A stretch of DNA of 64,000 nt, from NCBI RefSeq assembly GCF_021869535.1, contig NW_026262690.1:65410001-65474000 (forward strand), read 5' to 3'. Within the stretch, counting starts at the first letter, position 1; each line of letters opens with the position of its first letter. The notes under the pieces are model-generated. The model did no database searches, was not told the DNA's origin, and was given only the letters and a program-made list of their open reading frames with translations. Both the position numbers and the translations under genes were made by a program. Positions 7,527-57,995 of this stretch are shown piece after piece. This stretch comes from Mytilus californianus. Its lineage: Eukaryota.

Positions 7527-10500
7527 TCAAGAAAGAATAAAATGCTTCGCTGGGGCGCAGCTTGATACGACCGCAGAGGTCGAACCCTGAACAGTTGGGG
7601 CAAGTATGGACACAACATTCAAGCTTGATACAGCTCTGAATTTGGATTGTTATTAAATATTTGACACAGCATAGGTTTCTGACACAGAAAGAATGTGGTC
7701 TAAGAACTTGAATTTTTTTAATTTACCTATTATGGTCCAATGTCCAAAATCAAAATACATGGTTAGATTCAGCATATCAAAGAACCCCATATTTTCAATT
7801 TTTGTTGAAATCAAACAAAGTTTAATTTAAAATCAAAATACATGGTAAGATTCAGCATATCAAAGAACCCCATATTTTCAATTTTTGTTGAAATCAAACA
7901 AAGTTTAATTTTGGACCCCAACTTGGACAAACTTGAAAACTGGGCCCATAATCAAAAATCTAAACACATGTTTAGATTCAGCATATCAAAGAACCCCAAT
8001 AATTCAATTTTTGCTAAAATCAAACTAAGTTTAATTTTGGACCCTTTGGACCTTAATGTAGACCAATTTAAAAAACGGGACTTAAAATTAAAAATCTAAA
8101 TACACGGTTAGATTTGGAATATCAAAGAACCCCAATAATTCAATTTTTGATGAAATCAAACAAAGTTTAATTTTGGACCCTTTTGACCTCAATATGAACC
8201 AATTTGATAGCGGGGCCCACAAATAAAAAATCTAAATTCATGGTTAGATTCAGCATATCAAAGAACCTCATATATTCAATTTTTGTTGAAATCAAACAAA
8301 GTTTAATTTTGGACCCCAATTTGGACCAACTTGAAAACTGGGCCCATAATCAAAAATCTAAATACATGTTTAGATTCAGCATATCAAAGAACCCCATATA
8401 TTCAATTTTTGTTGAAATCAAACAAAGTTTAAATACTGGACCCTATCTTGGACCAACTTGAAAACAGGGCCCATAATCAAAAATCTAAACACATGTTTAG
8501 ATTTAGCATATCAAAGAACCCCAAGAATTCAATTTTTGTTAAAATCAAACTAAGTTTAATTTTGGACCATTTGGACCTCAATGAAGACCAATTTTAAAAA
8601 ATGGGACCCAAATTAAAAATCTAAAAACACGGTTAGATTTGGCATATCAAAGAACCCCAATAATTCAATTTTTGATGAAATCAAACAAAGTTTAATTTTA
8701 GACCCTTTTGACCTCAATATGAACCAATTTGATAGCGGGGCCCACAAATAAAAAATCTAAATACATGGTTAGATTCAGCATATCAAAGAACCTCATATAT
8801 TCAATTTTTGTTGAAATCAAACAAAGTTTAATTTTGGACCCCGATTTTGGACCAACTTGAAAACTGGGCCCATAATCAAAAATCTAAATACATGTTTAGA
8901 TTCAGCATATCAAAGAACCCCATATATTCAATTTTTGTTGAAATCAAACAAAGTTTACATACTGGACCCTATCTTGGACCAACTTGAAAACTGGGCCCAT
9001 AATCAAAAATCTAAACACATGTTTAGATTCAGCATATAAAAGAACCCCAAGAATTCAATTTTTGTTAAAATCAAACTAAGTTTAATTTTGGACCCTTTGG
9101 ACCTTAATGTAGACCAATTTAAAAAAAAGGACCCAAAATTAAAAATCTAAATACACGGTTAGATTTGGAATATCAAAGAACCCCAATAATTCAATTTTAG
9201 ATGAAATCAAACAAAGTTTAATTTTGGACCCTTTTGACCTCAATATGAACCAATTTGATAACGGGGGTCCACAAATAAAAAATTTAAATACATGGTTAGA
9301 TTCAGCATATCAAAGAACCCCATATATTCAATTTTTGTTGAAATCAAACAAAGTTTAATTTTGGACCCCAATTTGGACCAACTTGAAAACTGGGCCAAAA
9401 ATCAAAAATCTAAATACATGTTTAGATTCAGCATATCAAAGAACCTCATATATTCAATTTTTGCTAAAATCAAACAAAGTTTAATTTGGACCCTTTGGAC
9501 CTTAATGTAGACCAATTTGAAAACTGGACCCAAAATTAAAAATCTAAATACACTGTTAGATTCGGCATAACAAATAAATAAATGTGATCAAAGATTTTAC
9601 AAATCTAATGCGCCATACTGTGCAATTAAAGATTACTTCTTGAAATTTTTCAATATTTGAAATTTGAAAAAGAAATAATATTTGAAGAATAATTCTTTTT
9701 AATTTCTGAAATCTGAAATGAGAAAAAATTGACCCCCCACAATTTCTTTTTATCCCCCCCCCCCCTTTTTTCCCCAAAAAATTCTTTCCCTCAAGATATG
9801 GTCATAATCTCAATTCAAATTTCCAATGGAGTTGGCAACCATAATTACCCATTTAAATTTACCATAGTGCTAACTTAATCTATTTTATAATAGAATTAAA
9901 AATATAGTGTCAAATCTTTCATATGGATTTTTTTGTAAAAAAAAAAGATGCAACATTTGCAGATATTTTTACTGGTCTTCCTTTATAAATATGTATTTCT
10001 TTAAACATAATTTAAAAGCAGTGTAAGGGAAGTAACCAAAACGTTGTATTTGGATTACCTCCCTTACACTGTTTTAAATTATCTTTATTGTTCATTAACC
10101 ATTACTTTATACATAATTTAAAAGCAGTGTAAGGGAGATAATTTCAATGATGTATTTGATTTATCTCCCTTACACTGCTTTAAATTATGTTTTGTACTAA
10201 AGTATTTGTCCATTAACCAGGACAACCTTGTTTTTCCCCCTTTTTTGCCCCTAATTCCTAAACGGTTTGAGCCATAACCCCCCAAAGCAAATCCTAACCA
10301 TCCCTTTGTGGTATGGAAACTTGTAGTATAATTTCAGAGAGATCCATACACCGTTGCACAGTTATTGTCTGGAAACTAGAAAATGCTTATTTTTGGCCCC
10401 TTTTTGGCCCCTAATTCCTTAACTGTTGGTACCATAACCCCCAAAATCAATCCCAACCTTCCTTTTGTGGTATTTAACCTTATGGTCAAATTTCAAAAAG

Positions 10501-23408: not shown

Positions 23409-24338
23409 CTGCAAAAAAAAAAAAAACCAGCATGGATATGAAAACATCAAACTGCATGAAAGACAAAATGAACTTGACATTCTGTTTGACATAATTATTT
23501 TTACCAATCGCTGAAAATTTGTGATTGTCTTACATTTATATCTGGTCTGATTATTTTGTATACTGTTAGGTGTTTAATATGATCTTGTCTAAAGGGTTGT
23601 AGTGGCTCACTTGTCTAGGTAGTTAGTCAACATCTAATTTCCAGATCATTTTAGCCTATCACAAAACTAAGGAATAGGTTAAATCTTGTTTTGGCGACAC
23701 ATATGTGATATAGTAACATAAGCAATGTCTTAGTGCTTTTTATAAACATGATGTTGAATTCTGTAAATTAACCAAATATTTGGGTTCTTTTCTTCCATGT
23801 GTCTTTCATTGGGCTAATTGTCAAAAGTTGTTAATAGTCATTTTAATATATTTCAATACATTAAATGTCTTGAGTGTGTAACTGATGTATTGAAAGTCTT
23901 TGAGATCAAGGTCCCACTGTCAGTATCACAAAAACTTTACATTTGATTATTGAACCATGAAAATGAAGTCAAGATCAAGTGTACCAAGTCAGATGAAAAA
24001 GTCACCATTCTCACTGCCAGATAAGCATCCATGTTTTGCATTCTGAACCATTTGTCTCAGGGACAAAAAAAATCAAAAAGACTGAAAGACTTTATTTTAA
24101 TAAGTTTCCGAAACAAGAAGAAAGGAAGGATACAAGTAATCAGTAATTTCTTAAACCTTTGTGTAAATTTGGCACAGAAAAGTCATTAGCTGGGTACTAA
24201 TTTACAAGTTTTTAGAAGCACAATTTAAGTTTTGGGACTACAGAGCTCTTGTTCTGTCCCCATCCCCTCTCAAATTATGTTTCAAATTCATTAGCATCTA
24301 TCATATATCCAATCCTTTTCAACATTTGTAATACTTAC

Positions 24339-24470
24339 ACTTTTGAAAGATCAATGAGTTCTTTAAAGCTGGTGTTTCCTTCAGACAGTAAAAGAGATCC
24401 TAATCTCTTCACAACAGTTTTTAACCTATTATCAAGGTCAAAATGTACAGGAAAATGACTTATCCAGTAT
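24339..24470 (-). CDS. RASGRP: RASGRP REM exon (YWISHFPVHFDLDNRLKTVVKRLGSLLLSEGNTSFKELIDLSK)
   Basis: Acceptor t-run+atatag, donor gtaagt, 132 nt, phase 2/2. YWISHFPVHFDLD matches family YWILKFPAEFNLD. Confidence 0.95.
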
Positions 24471-26404
24471 CTATATAAAAAAAAAAAACAGGAATTGATT
24501 ATATCAATATTTGGAAAAATTTCGATGATTGTAAAATCGATCCATTTCACTTGATCATGACTAAATTATGTGTACGCTATAACAAAATTCAATGACATTG
24601 TTTTGTTTTTTTTATATTCATTTTTTTTGCACAGTTTCTGGCTAAAACTGAAGAATTCACTGCTAAATAGGGGAAAGCAGAATTCATTTTGGTAAATGTC
24701 AGGAAACTTTTTATCATTGATTTGGATTAAGGTTTCAGTACAAGCAGACTCTGAAGCAGTACTTAATTCACATTTTCTTATTTTTTTCATGTAACATATG
24801 TATAACATGTACTGCAAAATTATAACTGCTATGAATAATTCTGAGTACAATAGTCCTCTCTATGCATGCAGCATCAAGATTTGACCTTCAAAATTGTTCA
24901 TTTAAATCTTAGATGTAATTCTGATTAAATTCAGGTTGCTTTCATGTGAAAACTTGCAGAAAATGTTAAATAAGCATGAGTGGAAATAATGACTAATTTA
25001 TAAAAAAAAATCCTTATAATATATTTTTTATTCACAGTCTGCTTCCCACTTTTGAATTATTTATGATTGCTTTTTTCCACTGAGCATATATCATATTTTA
25101 TTCAACCATGGTTTAATATCCCATAGGTGGAATCTTCCTTGCAAGTGAACACCATTGAAATATATAATTTATTGAAATCGCAACAATGAGCTTGGAAAAA
25201 ACAACAAGTGACAAGTACATTTTACTTAAAAGTCAATATTTCATGTTTTCTTTTGTTCGGTTGTATTAAGTCCCTTTATTAAATGTCTGTCACATTAATT
25301 TGCACTATTGTTTTTACAACATAAAAATATATATTAATGTCGTTTTTCACACGGGCAATATTGATATTTTGTCAATGCATATTTAAAATTTATTGATATT
25401 ATTTTCCTTGTAAAAGAATACTTGAGCAAATCTAACAAAACGCAATAGCATTTTGACGTCAATCAAGTCTAATCTGTCGCTGATACACAGCCATCTAGAA
25501 TTGTCAATATAACAACAAGACTCAGCCTTTTTACTTCACACAAAAAATCAATTATTGAGCTCAAATTCTAAACAAGATTATGAAATTTTCTAGCTTGCTA
25601 CTAACTGGTAGATTGAACTGCTGAGTAAGATGTAAGAGGGAATAAAAAAAAATTTCTTCTTGAATTGACCTTACGGTTTCACCAATGTAAGGAGTATTTC
25701 AGATTTCTGTTTTGTTGTCTCATTATGTGTTGTTCGAAGTATAGAATTAATTCTTAACTTAGAAGGGTAAAGTAAAATCTGTCGTAAGAGATAGAAAGAC
25801 AAATTTGGAAGACTATTTGATATCGTCACAACTCTTTATTGATAAAAAAAAAGAACCACAACTGTCTCAAAGACTACGAGTGTAATGTGCCAGAAGTGAT
25901 GGCTTCCTTGTTTGGAAACTTACATGTTTTAGGGAAACATTTGTGTAATATTTGTTATTTCAAGACAATAACAACAATGTGCAAAACAAACACACACAAA
26001 TAGCTGTTCATCCATTCAATTTTTGGCTTTTTGTCTCCATAAGATGATCCTTGAAATTTGAGACTTCACATACAATAATGAAACCACAGTATATATCCTT
26101 AGGCACCCTATATATATAACTTTGATCAATACAATACACCTTGTCTCAACCTATTCTGAATCCTATCTTAAAATCTTAGATAATGCTCCAGTATTATTTA
26201 TATTCATTTGTTTCAATAGACCTATATGCCAAATACTATATCTAAAATCAAAGAGGTGAATCAATTGTTTTGGCATTTTTTTTTAAACATCAGACAAATC
26301 TAATCAATATAAACAGGTCTGTAACTCCTTAAAAAAGCTTCTGTACTTATTCTTGGATAAGTATCTGCATGTGTTTCTAAATATAGTTCTTATTTCTTCC
26401 ATAC

Positions 26405-26518
26405 CTTACAGCATAACAGATTTTTGCCTTGTAAATCTGTATTTCACATTCCGCATCCGAAGGCAGGTGGTCACACACATCTTTAGTACATTCTATGGTT
26501 TCGTGACAATTTTGGTAG
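26405..26518 (-). CDS. RASGRP: RASGRP REM exon (YQNCHETIECTKDVCDHLPSDAECEIQIYKAKICYAV)
   Basis: 114 nt, phase 2/2, open frame joining ...FIDL to ...AVRYW. KICYAVR matches family KICYFMR. Donor AG|gtatgg. Confidence 0.88.
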
Positions 26519-29500
26519 CTGGTTATAGTTAAGGGCAATACAATTCATGTATTAGAAATAAAAGCATATTGCACTAGAACATACATGCCCTTTAGTAAAC
26601 CTCTAGTAATGAACCAAAATATGCACACCCTTCAGCAACCAATCGAATTCCTTACATATGGTATTTTGATATAAATGTCATTTATGATTAATTTTTTCAA
26701 TATTAATAAAATTCAAACATGAAAATTTTAACTTCAGGCATACATTGTAGGCTCCAAATAGGCTGCGGTCTCAAAAAACATTTTTCAATAAGTTCACAAT
26801 AAAAAAAAAAAAAATTATCTACCTTGGCTCTAAATTGGTTTGATGAACCAACTATTATAATTCATTCAGTTTTTTTAGTAAAACTTAATTTCAGAGTGAC
26901 AAGAACTGAACTATCACTTAGCATCTTTACCTTTATAAGTATGTAATCTAAGTAAATGAATTATATACTAAAGGCTACAGTGACCAAATCTTATTGAACA
27001 CAGTTATACTAACTACATGCATCCTTGCACCATGTTGCAATATTGTAGGTCACTTAGTATTGGAGAAATAATTCCAAACATAAAACTGAACTTAAGTAAA
27101 AAGAGCATAAAATGTAAATCAGAATGTGAAGGTTATTGTATACCCCCAGTTGCATCTTAACACAAAGTTAAATAATTGTGAGACACATGGTATCTGAGAA
27201 ATGAACTCAAACCTCAAACTTTATATATACAATGAAGCATAAAATGTAAGTCTGAATGTCCTCCTTCACTAAAAATTTATGCATGGACAAATTATATGTT
27301 AAGGGTCACTTAACACAAAACTAGGACTAAAACAATATAATTCCGTCAAGCTTAATTAATAACCTAAACTCTATGTGCCAAAATCATTCATTAAGTTTCG
27401 CAGAATTTTATTTTATTTCAAATTTATACATTTTTTTCAAGCTCTAACATATTATTTCTTTTTGTAATGCAATAGAATCAGAACAACAGTACTGTAGTTG
27501 AAGAGTTGCCAAGGTAAATTTTGATTTGACGGTAGCAAATATTTGTTTTATTGTCTCCACTACTGCATTTGCAACAGTCAAATTGCCTATTGATGGTGGA
27601 AACTCTTCAACTACAGCACTGTAATTCCTTAAATACAAGTTATGCATCATTTATCTAAGGTAAATGGTCAGTCATTTCATGACATATTCATATATCCAAA
27701 ATTATATAGCTTTAGGTCAATTAGTTCTGAAAACTGGCTGAAAACATGCACATGAATGCAGATACTGATGTAGATATTGAGGTAATTCCAATATTTCAAA
27801 GATTTGGCAAAATGGATTCCAATAAAATAAAGGAGTTGTATAACTTTTTCCAGAAGTGTAATTTCTGACCATATGAGGCATATCTGCCAACTTTTCAAAA
27901 TCTCCATGGGGGATTTTAAGCACTAGAGGACCTTATGATTACCTATACATGTCATTAGTGTACTTAATTATGACATATATGTTATTTTTTACTATTCTGA
28001 ATGCCTTTTTTAAAGTATTAAGTCTAAATAACTGAGTTTTATAAGGGTCAGGTCAACACCTCCCATGGGGGATATCCCCCATAAAGTGGGAAAGTAATGG
28101 CGGGTCTGATGAGGCACCAGCACGAATACACTTTGAAAACAATGGAAATCTATACCATATGTAAACACATTATTTTCATTTCAAATTAAGAGAAGTGAAA
28201 TGACATGTTGTTCTCTACATTTTATAACAGTAAACTGCAGAAAAGCAGATAGCTTTAAAAAAAACTTTAAAGAATTACATACAAATAGAAAACAGACATA
28301 TCAAAACCACAAGTATTTTTTTTTTACATTTTATTTACAATGGCAGAATTCTTGCAATTACTCAATTAACTGTTAATTTCAAAATGTTCTTTAATGTCAG
28401 TTTTGAAAACATTGTAATGCCAATAAATCTGTCATCATGTTTCATCAATAAATTTTCTCATTTCTTCATGACATACATTAACTATTAATGTGAAAAATTC
28501 ATCAGTCTGTTAATTCTGTTTATAAGTATATAGACTGGCTTCATTGCAGGAATTGTTATTCAAAATCAGATGTAAATAACATCAATAAAAACATGATACT
28601 AGTGGATAAAAGATTATTTGGTAAATTGAACTTCAAAATAGTAACCCTCCAGTCCTGATAAACCCTAACCAAAATGTTACGTTGTAGATAGAACATGGAT
28701 TAGGAGAACTTCACAATAGTTACCCTCCAGTCCTGAGCCACCCTAATCAAACTGTTACGTTGTATTTAGAAGGTGGATTAGGAGAACTTCAGAATAGTTA
28801 CCATCAAGTCCTGAGCCACCCTAATCAAACTGTTACCGGTAGGTTGTAATTAGAAGGTGGATTAGGAGAACTTCAGAATAGTAACCATCCAGTCCTGAGC
28901 AACCCTAATCAAACTGTTAGGTTGTATTTGACAGGTGGATTAGGAGAACTTCACAATAGTAATCACCCAGTCCTGAGCCACCCTAATTAAACTGTTACGT
29001 GATAGTTAGAAAGTGGATTAGGAGAACTTCAGAATAGTAACCATCCAGTCCTGAGCCACCCTAATCAAACTGTTACGTTGTAGTAAGAAGGTGGATTAGG
29101 AGAACTTCACAATAGTTACCATCCAGTCCTGAACAACCCTTATCAAACTGTTACATTGTAGTTAGAAGGTGGATTAGGAGAACTTCACAATAGCAACCAT
29201 CATAATCAAACTATTAGGCTGTAACAGTGACATGTATAGTTGTTTTCATGTCTCTTGTTGTAAATGGAAGGTGGAATAGGAGAACTTAACAAAGTGCAGA
29301 TTTATTATGATGAAAAACAGGTTAATTCCTCTGAATGTTGCCTCTAGATGTGATTTGATTATTTGTTTATCTGGTTGCAGTCTATTAAATGTATACCCCA
29401 CATCTCCTTGTATTACAAAAGGCCTCTAATGATGAAGAGTTCTAATTGAAATATCTCATATTATTTACTAACTAAAGTCAATATCATAACTAATTCATAA

Positions 29501-30015
29501 TTGAGTTTCAAGATAATAATAAAACCTTTTTTCACGATTTTTCAGAAGTCAAAGGGAACCCTCCTTTTTTATAGCACAAATTCATATAGCATGTAAAACC
29601 AATTGAAAAATAACCCAATCGGATCCCCTTTTTCCAGGCCAGTGATCCTTATTCCTTTTCCCCAATGTCTGAAGTCCTAATATTAGTCTATGTTTAGCTT
29701 ATTCATAAAGCATTATTTCAAGCTATTCCCCAATGATGCTTTTCCAATTAATGATTTGCTGTAGTTGAACCTAGCTTATCCTTGACCATGATTTTAATCA
29801 TATGACTTTAAAAATTCACATGTTTTTCAACAAACTCTTAATTTAATATGCAGATTAAATTTTCTGAAAAAACATGCATTTGTAGTTTCTTTCTGAAAAA
29901 AAAATTACAAATGAAATTGAAAAGGAAAAATTTCAAAAAATTAGCAGAGAGTATGAATAGGATGTGGAAACTAAAAGTGTGCTGTCAGGTTAACAATATG
30001 TCTAACGAAGGATAC
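26519..30015 (-). other. U12-type (minor spliceosome) GT-AG intron
   Basis: 5' site GTATCCTTC (30015-30007). Branch site CCCTTAAC (26535-26528) 9 nt before the 3' end ...TATAACCAG. No polypyrimidine tract. Flanking exons join in frame (CT|C = Leu). Confidence 0.88.
28629..29290. repeat. 78-bp tandem array (~8 units) inside the U12 intron
   Basis: ggagaac recurs at 28703, 28781, 28865, 28943, 29021, 29099, 29177 (periods 78, 84, 78, 78, 78, 78). Confidence 0.95.
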
Positions 30016-30121
30016 AGATCAATAAATGTTTCTGCTAAATCTTCTGAGGAGATGAACCACTTATGCATCAGATACATCACATTAGGGTATTCTGTGTCCT
30101 CTATCAAGTCTCCTTCTTTGG
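30016..30121 (-). CDS. RASGRP: RASGRP REM exon (KEGDLIEDTEYPNVMYLMHKWFISSEDLAETFID)
   Basis: Acceptor ttttcag, 106 nt, phase 1/2. LMHKWFISSEDLA matches family LMHRWYLSSTELA. Donor is GTATCCTTC (U12 type). Confidence 0.93.
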
Positions 30122-31301
30122 CTGAAAATATACACAATGTAATAATTAATGTACAATGTTAAATCTTGTGTGCCTTAATCAACTCTTTTTCTAAAAAATT
30201 ATAAAGAAAAAAGACTTCACTACATACTTTCAGTGAAACATATCACACTAATCAATGTCATTTTATATCAGATCTGATTTCAAAAATTAATTCAAATGGA
30301 AGAGGGTAAAATGGAATTTAACTCCCATCACATCCTACCCTACCCCTCCCTCTCGCATCTAAAAAGAGATGAAATGGTACAAAAAGAAGAGACAAGATTA
30401 GTACAGATGTAAACTGCATACCAACAAAAATTAAAATGTAAAAAAAAAAATTGGGACTGAAGTTAAGCAATCCATAAAAACTTGGAATGATATTAGGTGC
30501 AATGGAAGGGTAGGCATATGCTTTTGATGTTGAAATGCCCTGAAGTAAGACAATCATATGTTATATAAAATAATGACAGAAATCCAGTGAGAGATAAAAA
30601 CATATTTAGGAGATGAGCATGCAATCATTTTTCCATGTTTTTTTCCTGCTACATTACAATATATGATGTTAAAATATTAGCAAAGTCATCCTTTTCTTTA
30701 TCTCTATCCCTAAAACAGATTTCTTTCTTCTAACATATACAATGTAATCAGAATCTAAGTATACAGATATATAAATAAAGAAGAAAATATTTGCTACTAA
30801 AACACTGACTGTTGTCAAAGAAAGGTTTCCATAATGTTTTTTACTAGCTTCTTTATATTTAGAATCCATGCTGTAATAATGATTTAAGGAAACACTACAT
30901 GTTTTATTATATAAATAAAAAAGGGGTAAAAATGAAAATATAAAAAAAATTTATTTTAATGAAGATTGCAGTCTTCATGATAAACTTTTAGTTCTGCAGG
31001 CCTGGAGCTTAATTTTTGGAAAATTTTAGTTGGATTCTGTTGGCCTGTAGGGATGCTTTTTACAGGCCCGAAAGGGATTTTACAAGCCTGGGCTGCTGGG
31101 CCTGTGGTTCAGCGGGAAGATTGAGAACTGCCTTCATCAACTGATTTACAATATCAAATATTTTGCAACAATGGAACAAAACGTGTGAACTGTTTTACTA
31201 GATATTTAGTACAAAAGATGTGTATATTGATTTTACAAACATAGATTTTTTGCATTGAACTGCAATGACATTTCAAAAATACTGAGAAATGATTGTATTG
31301 T

Positions 31302-31475
31302 GGTAAATTACCTGGTATGATAAATATACTATTATCTCAGAAGTTACCAAAGTACAAAAGGTAAATTACCTGGTATGATAAATATACTATTATCTCAGAA
31401 GTTACCAAAGTACAAAAGGTAAATTACCTGGTATGATAAATATACTATTATCTCAGAAGTTACCAAAGTACAAAA
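31302..31475. repeat. Exact 3 x 58-bp tandem repeat
   Basis: Unit ggtaaattacctggtatgataaatatactattatctcagaagttaccaaagtacaaaa at 31302, 31360 and 31418. Confidence 0.97.
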
Positions 31476-49009: not shown

Positions 49010-50175
49010 TACTTGAACGGGAATGCAGAATGACACATTTGTTAGGATGATAGGAACAAGAGAGCAAATGAATGATTCTAAATGGAACAAATGGTAGAAG
49101 TTGCAGTACAAGAGAACAAATGACACATTGCCCTGGAATATGAATACAAATGACACAATCTACAAAAATGGAAGTAACATGACACATTCCTCTGGAACAG
49201 ACTTTTCAGTCTTAAAACTTTACTCAGTACTCAAGAGTACAAAATTCATGCTATAAACATCAAATCCAGTATTTTGAGTGGTTCTGTGTATGATAATCAA
49301 TAATTTTTATGACCACAAGGCCTGGAATACAAATGACACAATCTACCAAAACATATGTAACATGACACATTCCCCTGGAACAGGAATTGAAATGACACAA
49401 TCTACTTAAACTAGTAACATGACACATTTCCCTAGAAAAGGATTATGAATGACACAATCTACCAAAACAGATGTAACATGATACTTTCCCACTGGAACAG
49501 GAATTCAAATGACACATTCTACTTAAATAAACAACATGCCACATTCCTCTGGAACAGGAATTCAAATGACACAATCTACTTAAACAAACAACATGACGCA
49601 TTCCTCTTGAATAGGAATACAAATGTCACAATCTACTAAAATGGATGTTACATGATATGTTCTCACTGGAATAGGAATAAAAATGACACAATCCACTAAA
49701 ACAGATGTTACATGATACGTTCCCACTGGAACAGGAATTCAAATGACACAATCTACTTAAACAAATAACACAAAATAATCCTCCTAAACAGGAATACAAA
49801 TGACACAATCTACTTAAACAAGTAACATGACATTTTCCTCTAGAACAAGAATACAAATGACACGATCTACTAAAACAATTGTAACATGACACATTCCCAC
49901 TGGAATAGAAATAAAATGACACAATCTACTTTAACAAGTAATATGACACATTCATCTGGAAGAGGAATACAAATGACACAATCTACTAAAACAGATGTAA
50001 CATGACACATTCCCACTGGAGTAGGAATAAAATGACACAATCTACTTTAACAAGTAAAATGAGAGATACATTCATCTGGAAGAGGAATACAAATGACACA
50101 ATCTACTAAAACAGATGTAACATGATACAATGCAACTTACCATGAAACAGGAATGCAAATGTCACAATCTACTTA
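49010..50175. repeat. 57-60-bp minisatellite (~15 well-preserved units from 49321 plus a few decayed units)
   Basis: aaatgacacaatctac recurs every 57-61 nt from 49331 to 50091. Confidence 0.93.
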
Positions 50176-54551: not shown

Positions 54552-55539
54552 ACAGAGATATGTCTCGCCTTTTTGTAACTTTGATAATGCAAATGTTGAA
54601 ATTAAAAAAGCAATACTTTTTAACATGTAAGTTATGCAAATATTCAAAGTTGATGAACCATGACTGAAGGTACATGGCTAAACAATCTCCATGGAAATGA
54701 GATGTGCCAGTGCTAATACAACTGCATACCAAATAGCATTGACTTATTATAGGTCGTTCCCTTTAAACAAACCTAAACACAAACATTAACTTGTAAACTA
54801 TGTAAAAGTTTCAAAGTCAATGAACAATGATGAGGTGGTGGGGCTATATAATCTCCAGGGAAACGATACTTGCAAATGCCAAGAAATTTGCATACCAAAT
54901 ACCACTGACTTAACATTAGCAGTTCATCTTAAAAGTGATCTAATCACAAACTAATAGGTGTGAACTAAGCAAAAGTTTCAAATTCAATAGACCATGAATG
55001 AGGGGATGGGGCCAAATGTTCTCCATGGAAATGAGATGTGCTAATGCTTATACAACTGAAAACCATTTAACATTGGCCTACCACTAAATGTTCCCCTTGA
55101 ACTGACCTAATCACAAACTAGTACATGTAAGCTAAGCAAAATTTTCAAAGTCAATAGACCATGACTAAGGGGGCAGAGCCAAATAATCTCCATGGAAATG
55201 AAATATGCCAATGCTTATACAACTGCATACCAAATATCATTGACCTACCACTAGTGGTTCCCCATAAACTGACCTAATCACAAACTAATACATGTAAACA
55301 ATGCAAAAGTTTCAAAGTCAATAAACCATGACTGAGGGGGCAGGACCAAATAATCTCCATGGAAATGAGATCTGCCAATGCTAATACAACTGCATACCAA
55401 ATATCATTAACCTACCACTTGTGGTTCAGCATAAACTAGACCTAATCACAAACTAATACATTGTTGACATCGCCGCCACTGACACCGGAAACAGCATACC
55501 TATGTCTAGCTTTTTGACTACGTCAAGGTGAGACAAAAA
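54552..55539 (+). mobile_element. Helentron/HINE-like element with five ~167-bp internal tandem units
   Basis: Subterminal atgtctcgcc, 3' hairpin atgtctagc-tttttgac-tac-gtcaag-gtgagac plus A-run. ctcca(t/g)ggaaa at 54687, 54853, 55021, 55188, 55355. Confidence 0.78.
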
Positions 55540-56829: not shown

Positions 56830-57995
56830 ATGTGGACAATAGAACATAGGGAAACAGCAAATGTGGACCATAGAACATAGGGGAACAGCAAATGTGGACC
56901 ATAGAACATAGGGAAACAGCAAATGAAGACCATAGAACATAGGGCACAACAAGTGGACCATAAAACATAAGGAAACAGCAAATGTGGACCATAGAACATA
57001 GGGGAACAGCAAATGTAGACCATAGAACATAGGAAAACAGCAAATGAAGACCATAGAACATAGGGCACAACAAGTGGACCATAGAACATAGGGAAACAGC
57101 AAATGTGGACCATAGAACATAGGGCACACCAAGTGGACCATAGAACATAGGTCACAACAAATGTGGAACATAGAACATAGGGCACAACAAATGTGGACCA
57201 TAGAACATACGGGAACAGCAAATGTGGACCATAGAACAGAGGAAAACAGCAAATGAATATCATAGAACATAGGGCACAACAAGTGGACCATAAAACATAG
57301 GGAAACAGCAAATGTGGACCATAGAACAAAGGGGAACAGCACATGTGGACCATAGAACATAGGAAAACAGCAAATGAAGACCATAGAACATAGGGCACAA
57401 CAAGTGGACCATAGAACATAGGAAAACAGCAAATGTGGACCATAGAACATAGGGCACACCAAGTGGACCATAGAACATAGGTCACAACAAATGTGGAACA
57501 TAGAACATAGGTCACAACAAATGTGGACCATAGAACATAGGGCACAACAAATGTGGACCATAGAACATAGGGGAACAGCAAATGTGGACCATAGAACAGA
57601 GGAAAACAGCAAATGAATATCATAGAACATAGGGCACAACAAGTGGACCATAAAACATAGGGAAACAGCAAATGTGGACCATAGAACATAGGGGAACAGT
57701 ACATGTGGACCATAGAACATAGGAAAACAGCAAATGAAGACCATAGAACATAGGGCACAACAAGTGGACCATAGAACATAGGGAAACAGCAAATGTGGAC
57801 CATAGAACATAGGGCACAACAAATGTGGACCATAGAACATAGGGCACAACAAGTGGACAATAGAACATAGGAAAACAGCAAATGTGGACCATAGAACATA
57901 GCGCACAACAAGAGGACCATAGAACATAGGGGAACAGCAAATGTGGACCATAGAACAAAGGGCACGACAAATATGGACCATAGAAAACAGCAAAA
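56830..57995. repeat. 28/30/31-bp minisatellite (~39 units) with ~330-360-bp higher-order periodicity
   Basis: Units accatagaacatagggcacaacaa(at)gtgg and accatagaacatagggaaacagcaaatgtgg. Rare variant aaatgaatatcat at 57251 and 57611. Confidence 0.97.

Follow-up and report, generated by a model that had tools for sequence, protein, structure and literature searches.

Which spliceosome removes the second intron of a RASGRP gene in Mytilus californianus, and how old is the signal that recruits it? The question is raised by a stretch of 64,000 nucleotides (nt) from this species (NCBI RefSeq assembly GCF_021869535.1, contig NW_026262690.1, positions 65,410,001 to 65,474,000 of the forward strand), hereafter the window, which contains no N and has 30.8% G+C. 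An earlier note, made from the letters of the window, had read the intron as a minor-spliceosome (U12-type) intron. Our analysis supports that reading: intron 2 of the 12 core exons (26519..30015, minus strand; 3497 nt, phase 2), as delimited by sequence, an RNA joint and a gene model, is a GT-AG intron that interrupts the REM domain of a RASGRP gene and is probably removed by the minor (U12-dependent) spliceosome, a reading to which we give a probability of about 0.93.

Both ends of the intron carry minor-type motifs. The donor boundary lies between 30016 and 30015 on the minus strand (...TTTATTGATCT/GTATCCTTCGTTAG), where the upstream exon ends ...TTT ATT GAT CT, and the acceptor boundary between 26519 and 26518 (...TTGCCCTTAACTATAACCAG/CTACCAAAATTG), so that a leucine codon is split CT/C by the intron in phase 2 (FIDL/YQ). 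The minor-type 5′ splice site GTATCCTTC (30007..30015, minus strand), the U11/U6atac recognition element, matches RTATCCTT perfectly: GTATCCTT at 30015-30008 is one of only three such exact sites that the minus strand of the window contains, and position +9 is C, not T. A minor-type branch-point sequence, CCCTTAAC (26528..26535, minus strand), includes the core CCTTAAC (26534-26528), which matches at seven of seven positions; the base before the core is C, where the consensus TCCTTRAC has T, and the two bases directly upstream of it are GC, not TT. The last base of CCCTTAAC stands 9 nt before the last base of the intron, which puts the candidate branch adenosines, 26530 and 26529, at a distance of 10-11 nt from the 3′ end. 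In U12-type introns the branch point is expected about 10-20 nt from the 3′ splice site. Donor and branch motif thus have the letters that the earlier note had given them, at the places it had named.

The AG of the 3′ splice site (26519..26520, minus strand), supported by the sequence and the RNA joint, is not preceded by a pyrimidine tract (TATAACCAG), and the last 20 nt of the intron hold no pyrimidine run outside the branch motif. The missing tract, also claimed earlier, is real, though a weak discriminator in this AT-rich gene, because the pyrimidine fraction from -20 to -4 (0.65) falls within the range of the gene's other introns (0.59-0.82), of which introns 7 and 8 are pyrimidine-poor too. 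The ten remaining introns of the 12-exon core show the ordinary U2-type signals that had been ascribed to them: their donors are GTAAGT (six introns), GTATGG, GTTTGT, GTAAAT or GTATGT, each with at least three mismatches to RTATCCTTT, and their 3′ ends are T-rich in most cases.

The U12 class was judged by mismatches to the consensus and by chance counts of the motifs. Over both strands of the window (128 kb) there are 9 exact copies of RTATCCTT and 11 of CCTTAAC, where chance would give 6.65 and 6.4, respectively. Each motif is therefore rare (about 5e-5 per position), and the presence of both at the two ends of a single RNA-confirmed intron, for which we estimate a chance of about 1e-7 per intron, is far beyond coincidence.

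RNA data over 24300-30250 came from one set of raw RNA-seq reads (X12) and three contig runs (X7, X8 and X1). The joint 26518/30016, which skips 3497 nt as CT..AC on the plus strand (GT..AG on the strand of the gene), is present in two raw X12 reads with two different starts and in one spliced contig each from X7 (2442 nt), X8 (918 nt) and X1 (713 nt). X1 carries a different organism label, and the joint is thus found in contigs of three runs under two labels. All three spliced contigs also join 24470/26405 (intron 3), and at 30121 they run on into sequence matching the end of exon 1. No rival joint at these exon ends was seen in X12, X7, X8 or X1, so reads and contigs use exactly 30016/26518 with no other donor or acceptor; this was a check proposed with the original reading. 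The intron is removed in vivo at exactly these sites. In none of the four runs is there any depth over unique intronic bins beside the exons, and the sole unspliced piece listed near the exons, an X1 contig at 26136-26413 with a depth of 4.9 (the spliced contig has 48.3), crosses a boundary of the U2-type intron 3 and no boundary of the U12-type intron. The four runs, which are sparse and of low coverage, give no sign that the U12-type intron is preferentially retained; the rate-limiting role in RASGRP expression that the earlier note had raised is conjectural.

Judged by homology, the gene is a RASGRP. The translation of exon 9 (7296-7116, minus strand; 65 amino acids) matches solved structures of RASGRP1, RASGRP4 and RASGRP2, and a search with it of 1.84 billion representative proteins returned 121 relatives, full-length ones included, whose named members or cluster members are RAS guanyl-releasing protein 1, 2-B-like or 3-like. 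The REM-domain exons of 35 and 37 amino acids, searched singly against solved structures, gave nothing useful, being too short. Exons 1-9 align to RASGRP homologues with Pfam RasGEF_N and RasGEF, indicating that the REM domain and the CDC25-type catalytic module are both present. The junction FIDL/YQ falls inside the RasGEF_N/REM domain, and Pfam RasGEF_N spans the corresponding junction in the chicken, scorpion and anemone proteins. Structure matches, homologue alignment and Pfam RasGEF_N therefore bear out both the gene name and the REM-domain location proposed for the intron. The fuller designation, a mollusc RASGRP, stands as to the gene; its molluscan part is supported indirectly, the nearest named relative being the sea slug Elysia marginata (a gastropod), with 77% identity on exon 9.

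The age of the intron was addressed by comparing genomic loci of relatives that include the REM region, the cnidarian evidence being from one species. Four orthologous introns were found. That of E. marginata (locus L006, which contains assembly-gap Ns) reads ...ATCGACCT/GTATCCTTTT...GACCTTGACTTTCGACCCCGCCCAG/ATACCAAGG (GT-AG, 331 nt), its U12 signals being GTATCCTTT...CCTTGAC followed by 16 nt ending in AG. In the scorpion Centruroides vittatus (L008) the intron reads ...TTAATTT/ATATCCTTTAC...TTTCCTTAATTATTTAC/ATTTTGGAA (AT-AC, 1778 nt), with ATATCCTTT...TTTCCTTAAT and then 7 nt ending in AC; in the sea anemone Actinostola sp. (L009) it reads ...CTCAATGC/GTATCCTTTTC...ATCCTTGACAAGTACGATATTAG/TTATGTGAA (GT-AG, 488 nt), with GTATCCTTT...TCCTTGAC and then 14 nt ending in AG; and in chicken (Gallus gallus) RASGRP1 (L011) it reads ...AGTGATCT/ATATCCTTTAA...TTTTTCCTTAACGTTTTCTAC/TTATCTTAG (AT-AC, 548 nt), with ATATCCTTT...TTCCTTAAC and then 9 nt ending in AC. 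All four follow the second base of the codon aligned with the leucine of the window, so that position and phase 2 are identical. The donor and branch motifs persist from phylum to phylum, and the remainder of the intron, at lengths from 331 to 3497 nt, is unalignable. Two further loci (P0051 and P0050) are transcript contigs and hence uninformative on introns.

A minor intron at the homologous position in four other animals agrees with the earlier proposal that the intron is ancient and conserved. Each refuting condition that the earlier note had set was checked, directly or by approximation, and no outcome contradicted the U12-type reading. Since U12 signals stand at the same codon position and phase in a cnidarian, a chelicerate, a gastropod and a vertebrate, the intron is orthologous to the minor intron of vertebrate RASGRP genes. 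The simplest reading is that the last ancestor shared by cnidarians and bilaterians already had it, that some lineages later lost it, and that its terminal dinucleotides switched between AT-AC and GT-AG.

The comparison touches on annotation as well. The deposited E. marginata model (L006:1787-3160, P0008) joins ...ERLIQ straight to YQGCEE and omits the exon at about 2638-2716 (KFVTVFFLMHQWFMTSEELAQAFIDL), the one that precedes the U12-type intron. The omission is probably due to a gene predictor failing on the U12 donor GTATCC, and the intron described here is useful for annotation.

Several observations weigh against the U12-type reading or narrow it. Conservation is not universal: a priapulid, a cockroach and a rotifer lack the intron and have fused exons, the coding sequence being continuous at the homologous point (L001:6595-6645, L007:3078-3314 and L004:1870-1914, respectively). 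We take the L001 assembly accession to be that of Priapulus caudatus and L004 to be a rotifer assembly; the assembly of L007 is one to which genome papers on cockroaches and termites refer. All three look like independent, clean losses of the minor intron with exactly fused exons. In the window, the extended branch motif GCCCTTAAC has two mismatches to the 9-mer TTCCTTRAC, its 7-nt core being perfect. Support from raw reads is thin, at two junction reads, the stronger support coming from assembled contigs. Finally, an Rfam scan of the 64-kb window, which alone was scanned, matched no RNA family and hence no minor small nuclear RNA gene.

The alternative that best withstands these data is that the intron is of a hybrid or "minor-like" type, open to removal by either spliceosome; such introns, in which the minor signals are weakened, have been described (PMC11347168). 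The C at donor position +9 and the GC upstream of the branch core would fit such an intron, and minor-like introns, which rely in part on U2AF1 and on other branch points, are a documented class (PMC11347168); yet the core that pairs with U11 and U6atac (+4 to +9, TCCTTC) is intact, as is the U12-pairing CCTTAAC, including the CC reported to be decisive for use of the minor branch point (PMC11347168), the distance from branch to 3′ end is short, as in true minor introns, and there is no pyrimidine tract for U2AF. We consider this alternative very unlikely. It is scarcely credible that the intron is of the ordinary U2 type, with a chance resemblance of its ends to U12 signals: its GT-AG termini and a 3′ pyrimidine fraction that is not below that of some U2-type introns of the gene would allow it, but the donor TCT/GTATCC is a poor U1 site (the exon ending TCT leaves little U1 complementarity), both motifs lie at the two ends of one confirmed intron, the same motifs are kept in four distant species in introns otherwise beyond alignment, and two of the orthologues are AT-AC introns with ATATCCTTT, a hallmark of the minor class.

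For the U12-dependent intron that we prefer, removal would proceed as follows. U11 would pair with the donor GTATCCTT, where U6atac would pair later, and U12 would pair with CCTTAAC about 10 nt from the AG, leaving the branch adenosine bulged. U4atac/U6atac-U5 would then perform both catalytic steps. The 3′ site would be set by the short distance from branch to AG, so that neither a pyrimidine tract nor recognition of the U2AF type would be needed. The satellite, hairpin and dispersed-repeat fragment described below would be passenger insertions that have enlarged the intron to a size typical of the gene.

A more ambitious view gives the intron an active role: with its unusual size, its very stable hairpin and its satellite it would retard or gate minor splicing, the activity of the minor spliceosome would tune RASGRP output in this animal, and the repeated switches between AT-AC and GT-AG at one ancient site would mark a lineage-specific reading of the gene by the minor spliceosome. 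The intron is indeed 6-10 times as long as its gastropod, anemone and chicken orthologues. We regard this view as unlikely.

Minor introns in RASGRP genes are known already, as the earlier note had stated for vertebrates; the RASGRP family is full of them, and this intron is a sound but ordinary case. In human, 100% of RASGRP genes contain minor introns (PMC6865273); intron 4 of mouse Rasgrp3 is U12-dependent and is retained in a model of spinal muscular atrophy (PMC5224493); and RASGRP4 of human and mouse has a minor intron reported as AT-AA, unlike the GT-AG intron of the window (PMC1557818). The minor introns of vertebrate RASGRP1-4 (among them that of chicken RASGRP1 and "intron 4" of mouse Rasgrp3) resemble the Mytilus intron in codon position (second base of the leucine, ...DL/Y...), in phase and in their location in the REM domain, as well as in a donor of the consensus [A/G]TATCCTT and a branch site of the consensus TCCTTAAC close to the 3′ end. 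The chicken RASGRP1 intron differs in being AT-AC and 548 nt long, whereas that of the window is GT-AG, 3497 nt long and repeat-bearing.

The introns of E. marginata and Actinostola sp. share the GT-AG subtype, the position and the phase. Their donor is GTATCCTTT and their branch core CCTTGAC, with G at the R position where the window has A; with 331 and 488 nt they are far shorter, and the branch motif is 14-16 nt from the end, as against 9 in the window. In comparison with the canonical U12-type GT-AG introns of SpliceRack, U12DB, IAOD and MIDB, the likeness extends to the rigid donor, the rigid branch site near the 3′ end, the lack of a pyrimidine tract and the non-zero phase typical of minor introns (PMC10639083); nothing essential differs, the Mytilus intron being somewhat long and repeat-rich. 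Minor introns are relatively abundant in molluscs and arachnids (PMC10639083), and orthologous intron classes have been catalogued across Mollusca and Cnidaria (PMC11347168). What this locus adds is a clean, RNA-supported case, in a gene family of the Ras pathway, of a minor intron that has kept its codon position in cnidarians, vertebrates and molluscs alike; it is also useful as an indicator of how active the minor spliceosome is in this animal.

The 12 exons, all on the minus strand, were obtained by aligning the two nearest full-length relatives, with ends set by frame and splice signals. The intron is flanked by two REM-domain exons that are also supported by translation and by contig pieces from X1, X7 and X8, namely exon 2 upstream (30121-30016, 106 nt, ending ...SKEGDLIEDTEYPNVMYLMHKWFISSEDLAETFIDL) and exon 3 downstream (26518-26405, 114 nt, YQNCHETIECTKDVCDHLPSDAECEIQIYKAKICYAVR). 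Exon 1 lies at 34974-34887, and exons 4-8 at 24470-24339, 23408-23258, 18399-18226, 13933-13817 and 10820-10723. Exon 9, given above, is followed by exon 10 (3359-3279), exon 11 (2511-2410) and exon 12 (874-759), which codes for AVFKNYDHDRDGFISHAEFEAIAGNF and corresponds by alignment to the EF-hand region of homologues, so that the EF-hand pair after the GEF domain is present. Beyond exon 12 the gene leaves the window at its start, before the C1 (diacylglycerol-binding) domain. Intron 4 (24338-23409) holds a second exact GTATCCTT on the strand of the gene (24126-24133); as a donor it is unused in the RNA contigs.

Within the U12-type intron lies a tandem satellite (28628..29201) of 7.3 copies of a 78-base-pair (bp) unit with 87% matches (Tandem Repeats Finder score 833), and no further copies of this satellite were found elsewhere in the window. 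An inverted repeat (27481..27627) has arms at 27481-27511 and 27597-27627 (31 nt, 87% complementary); the hairpin of about 150 nt folds as RNA into a long stem at -56.6 kcal/mol (z = -6.75 relative to shuffles) and is probably a foldback insertion or one resembling a miniature inverted-repeat transposable element. A segment at 27880..28095 reaches depths of 180-400 in the contig runs with flanks that differ between records; because depths in the hundreds and differing flanks accompany it, this is a piece of a dispersed repeat transcribed from other loci. A transfer RNA (tRNA) scan of the intron found none, so the segment is no obvious tRNA-derived short interspersed element.

Satellite and hairpin look like ordinary repeat cargo. 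Both had been noticed before, as features that the intron had tolerated while expanding to 3.5 kb. Both are real, but at 3.5 kb the intron is within the range of the gene's other introns (0.8-4.9 kb), and its expansion is thus ordinary intron growth in this genome.

Tandem arrays are found in other parts of the window as well. Intron 8 contains a large one (7746-9574), built of 83-, 136- and 399-bp units (the 136-bp unit in about 12 copies), which produces a ladder of similar short open reading frames on the minus strand. A satellite at 56830-57985 consists of 38.5 copies of a 31-bp unit, with higher-order units of 59 and 121 bp; it is open in all three minus-strand frames and gives rise to spurious open reading frames of 389-400 amino acids, which are not genes. 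The region upstream of the core exons is satellite-rich, with arrays at 49324-50129 and 54623-55461 (57 bp in 13.8 copies and 167 bp in 5.0 copies, respectively). In intron 1, a 58-bp tandem repeat at 31302-31475 is present in three copies with 100% matches, which suggests a very recent duplication.

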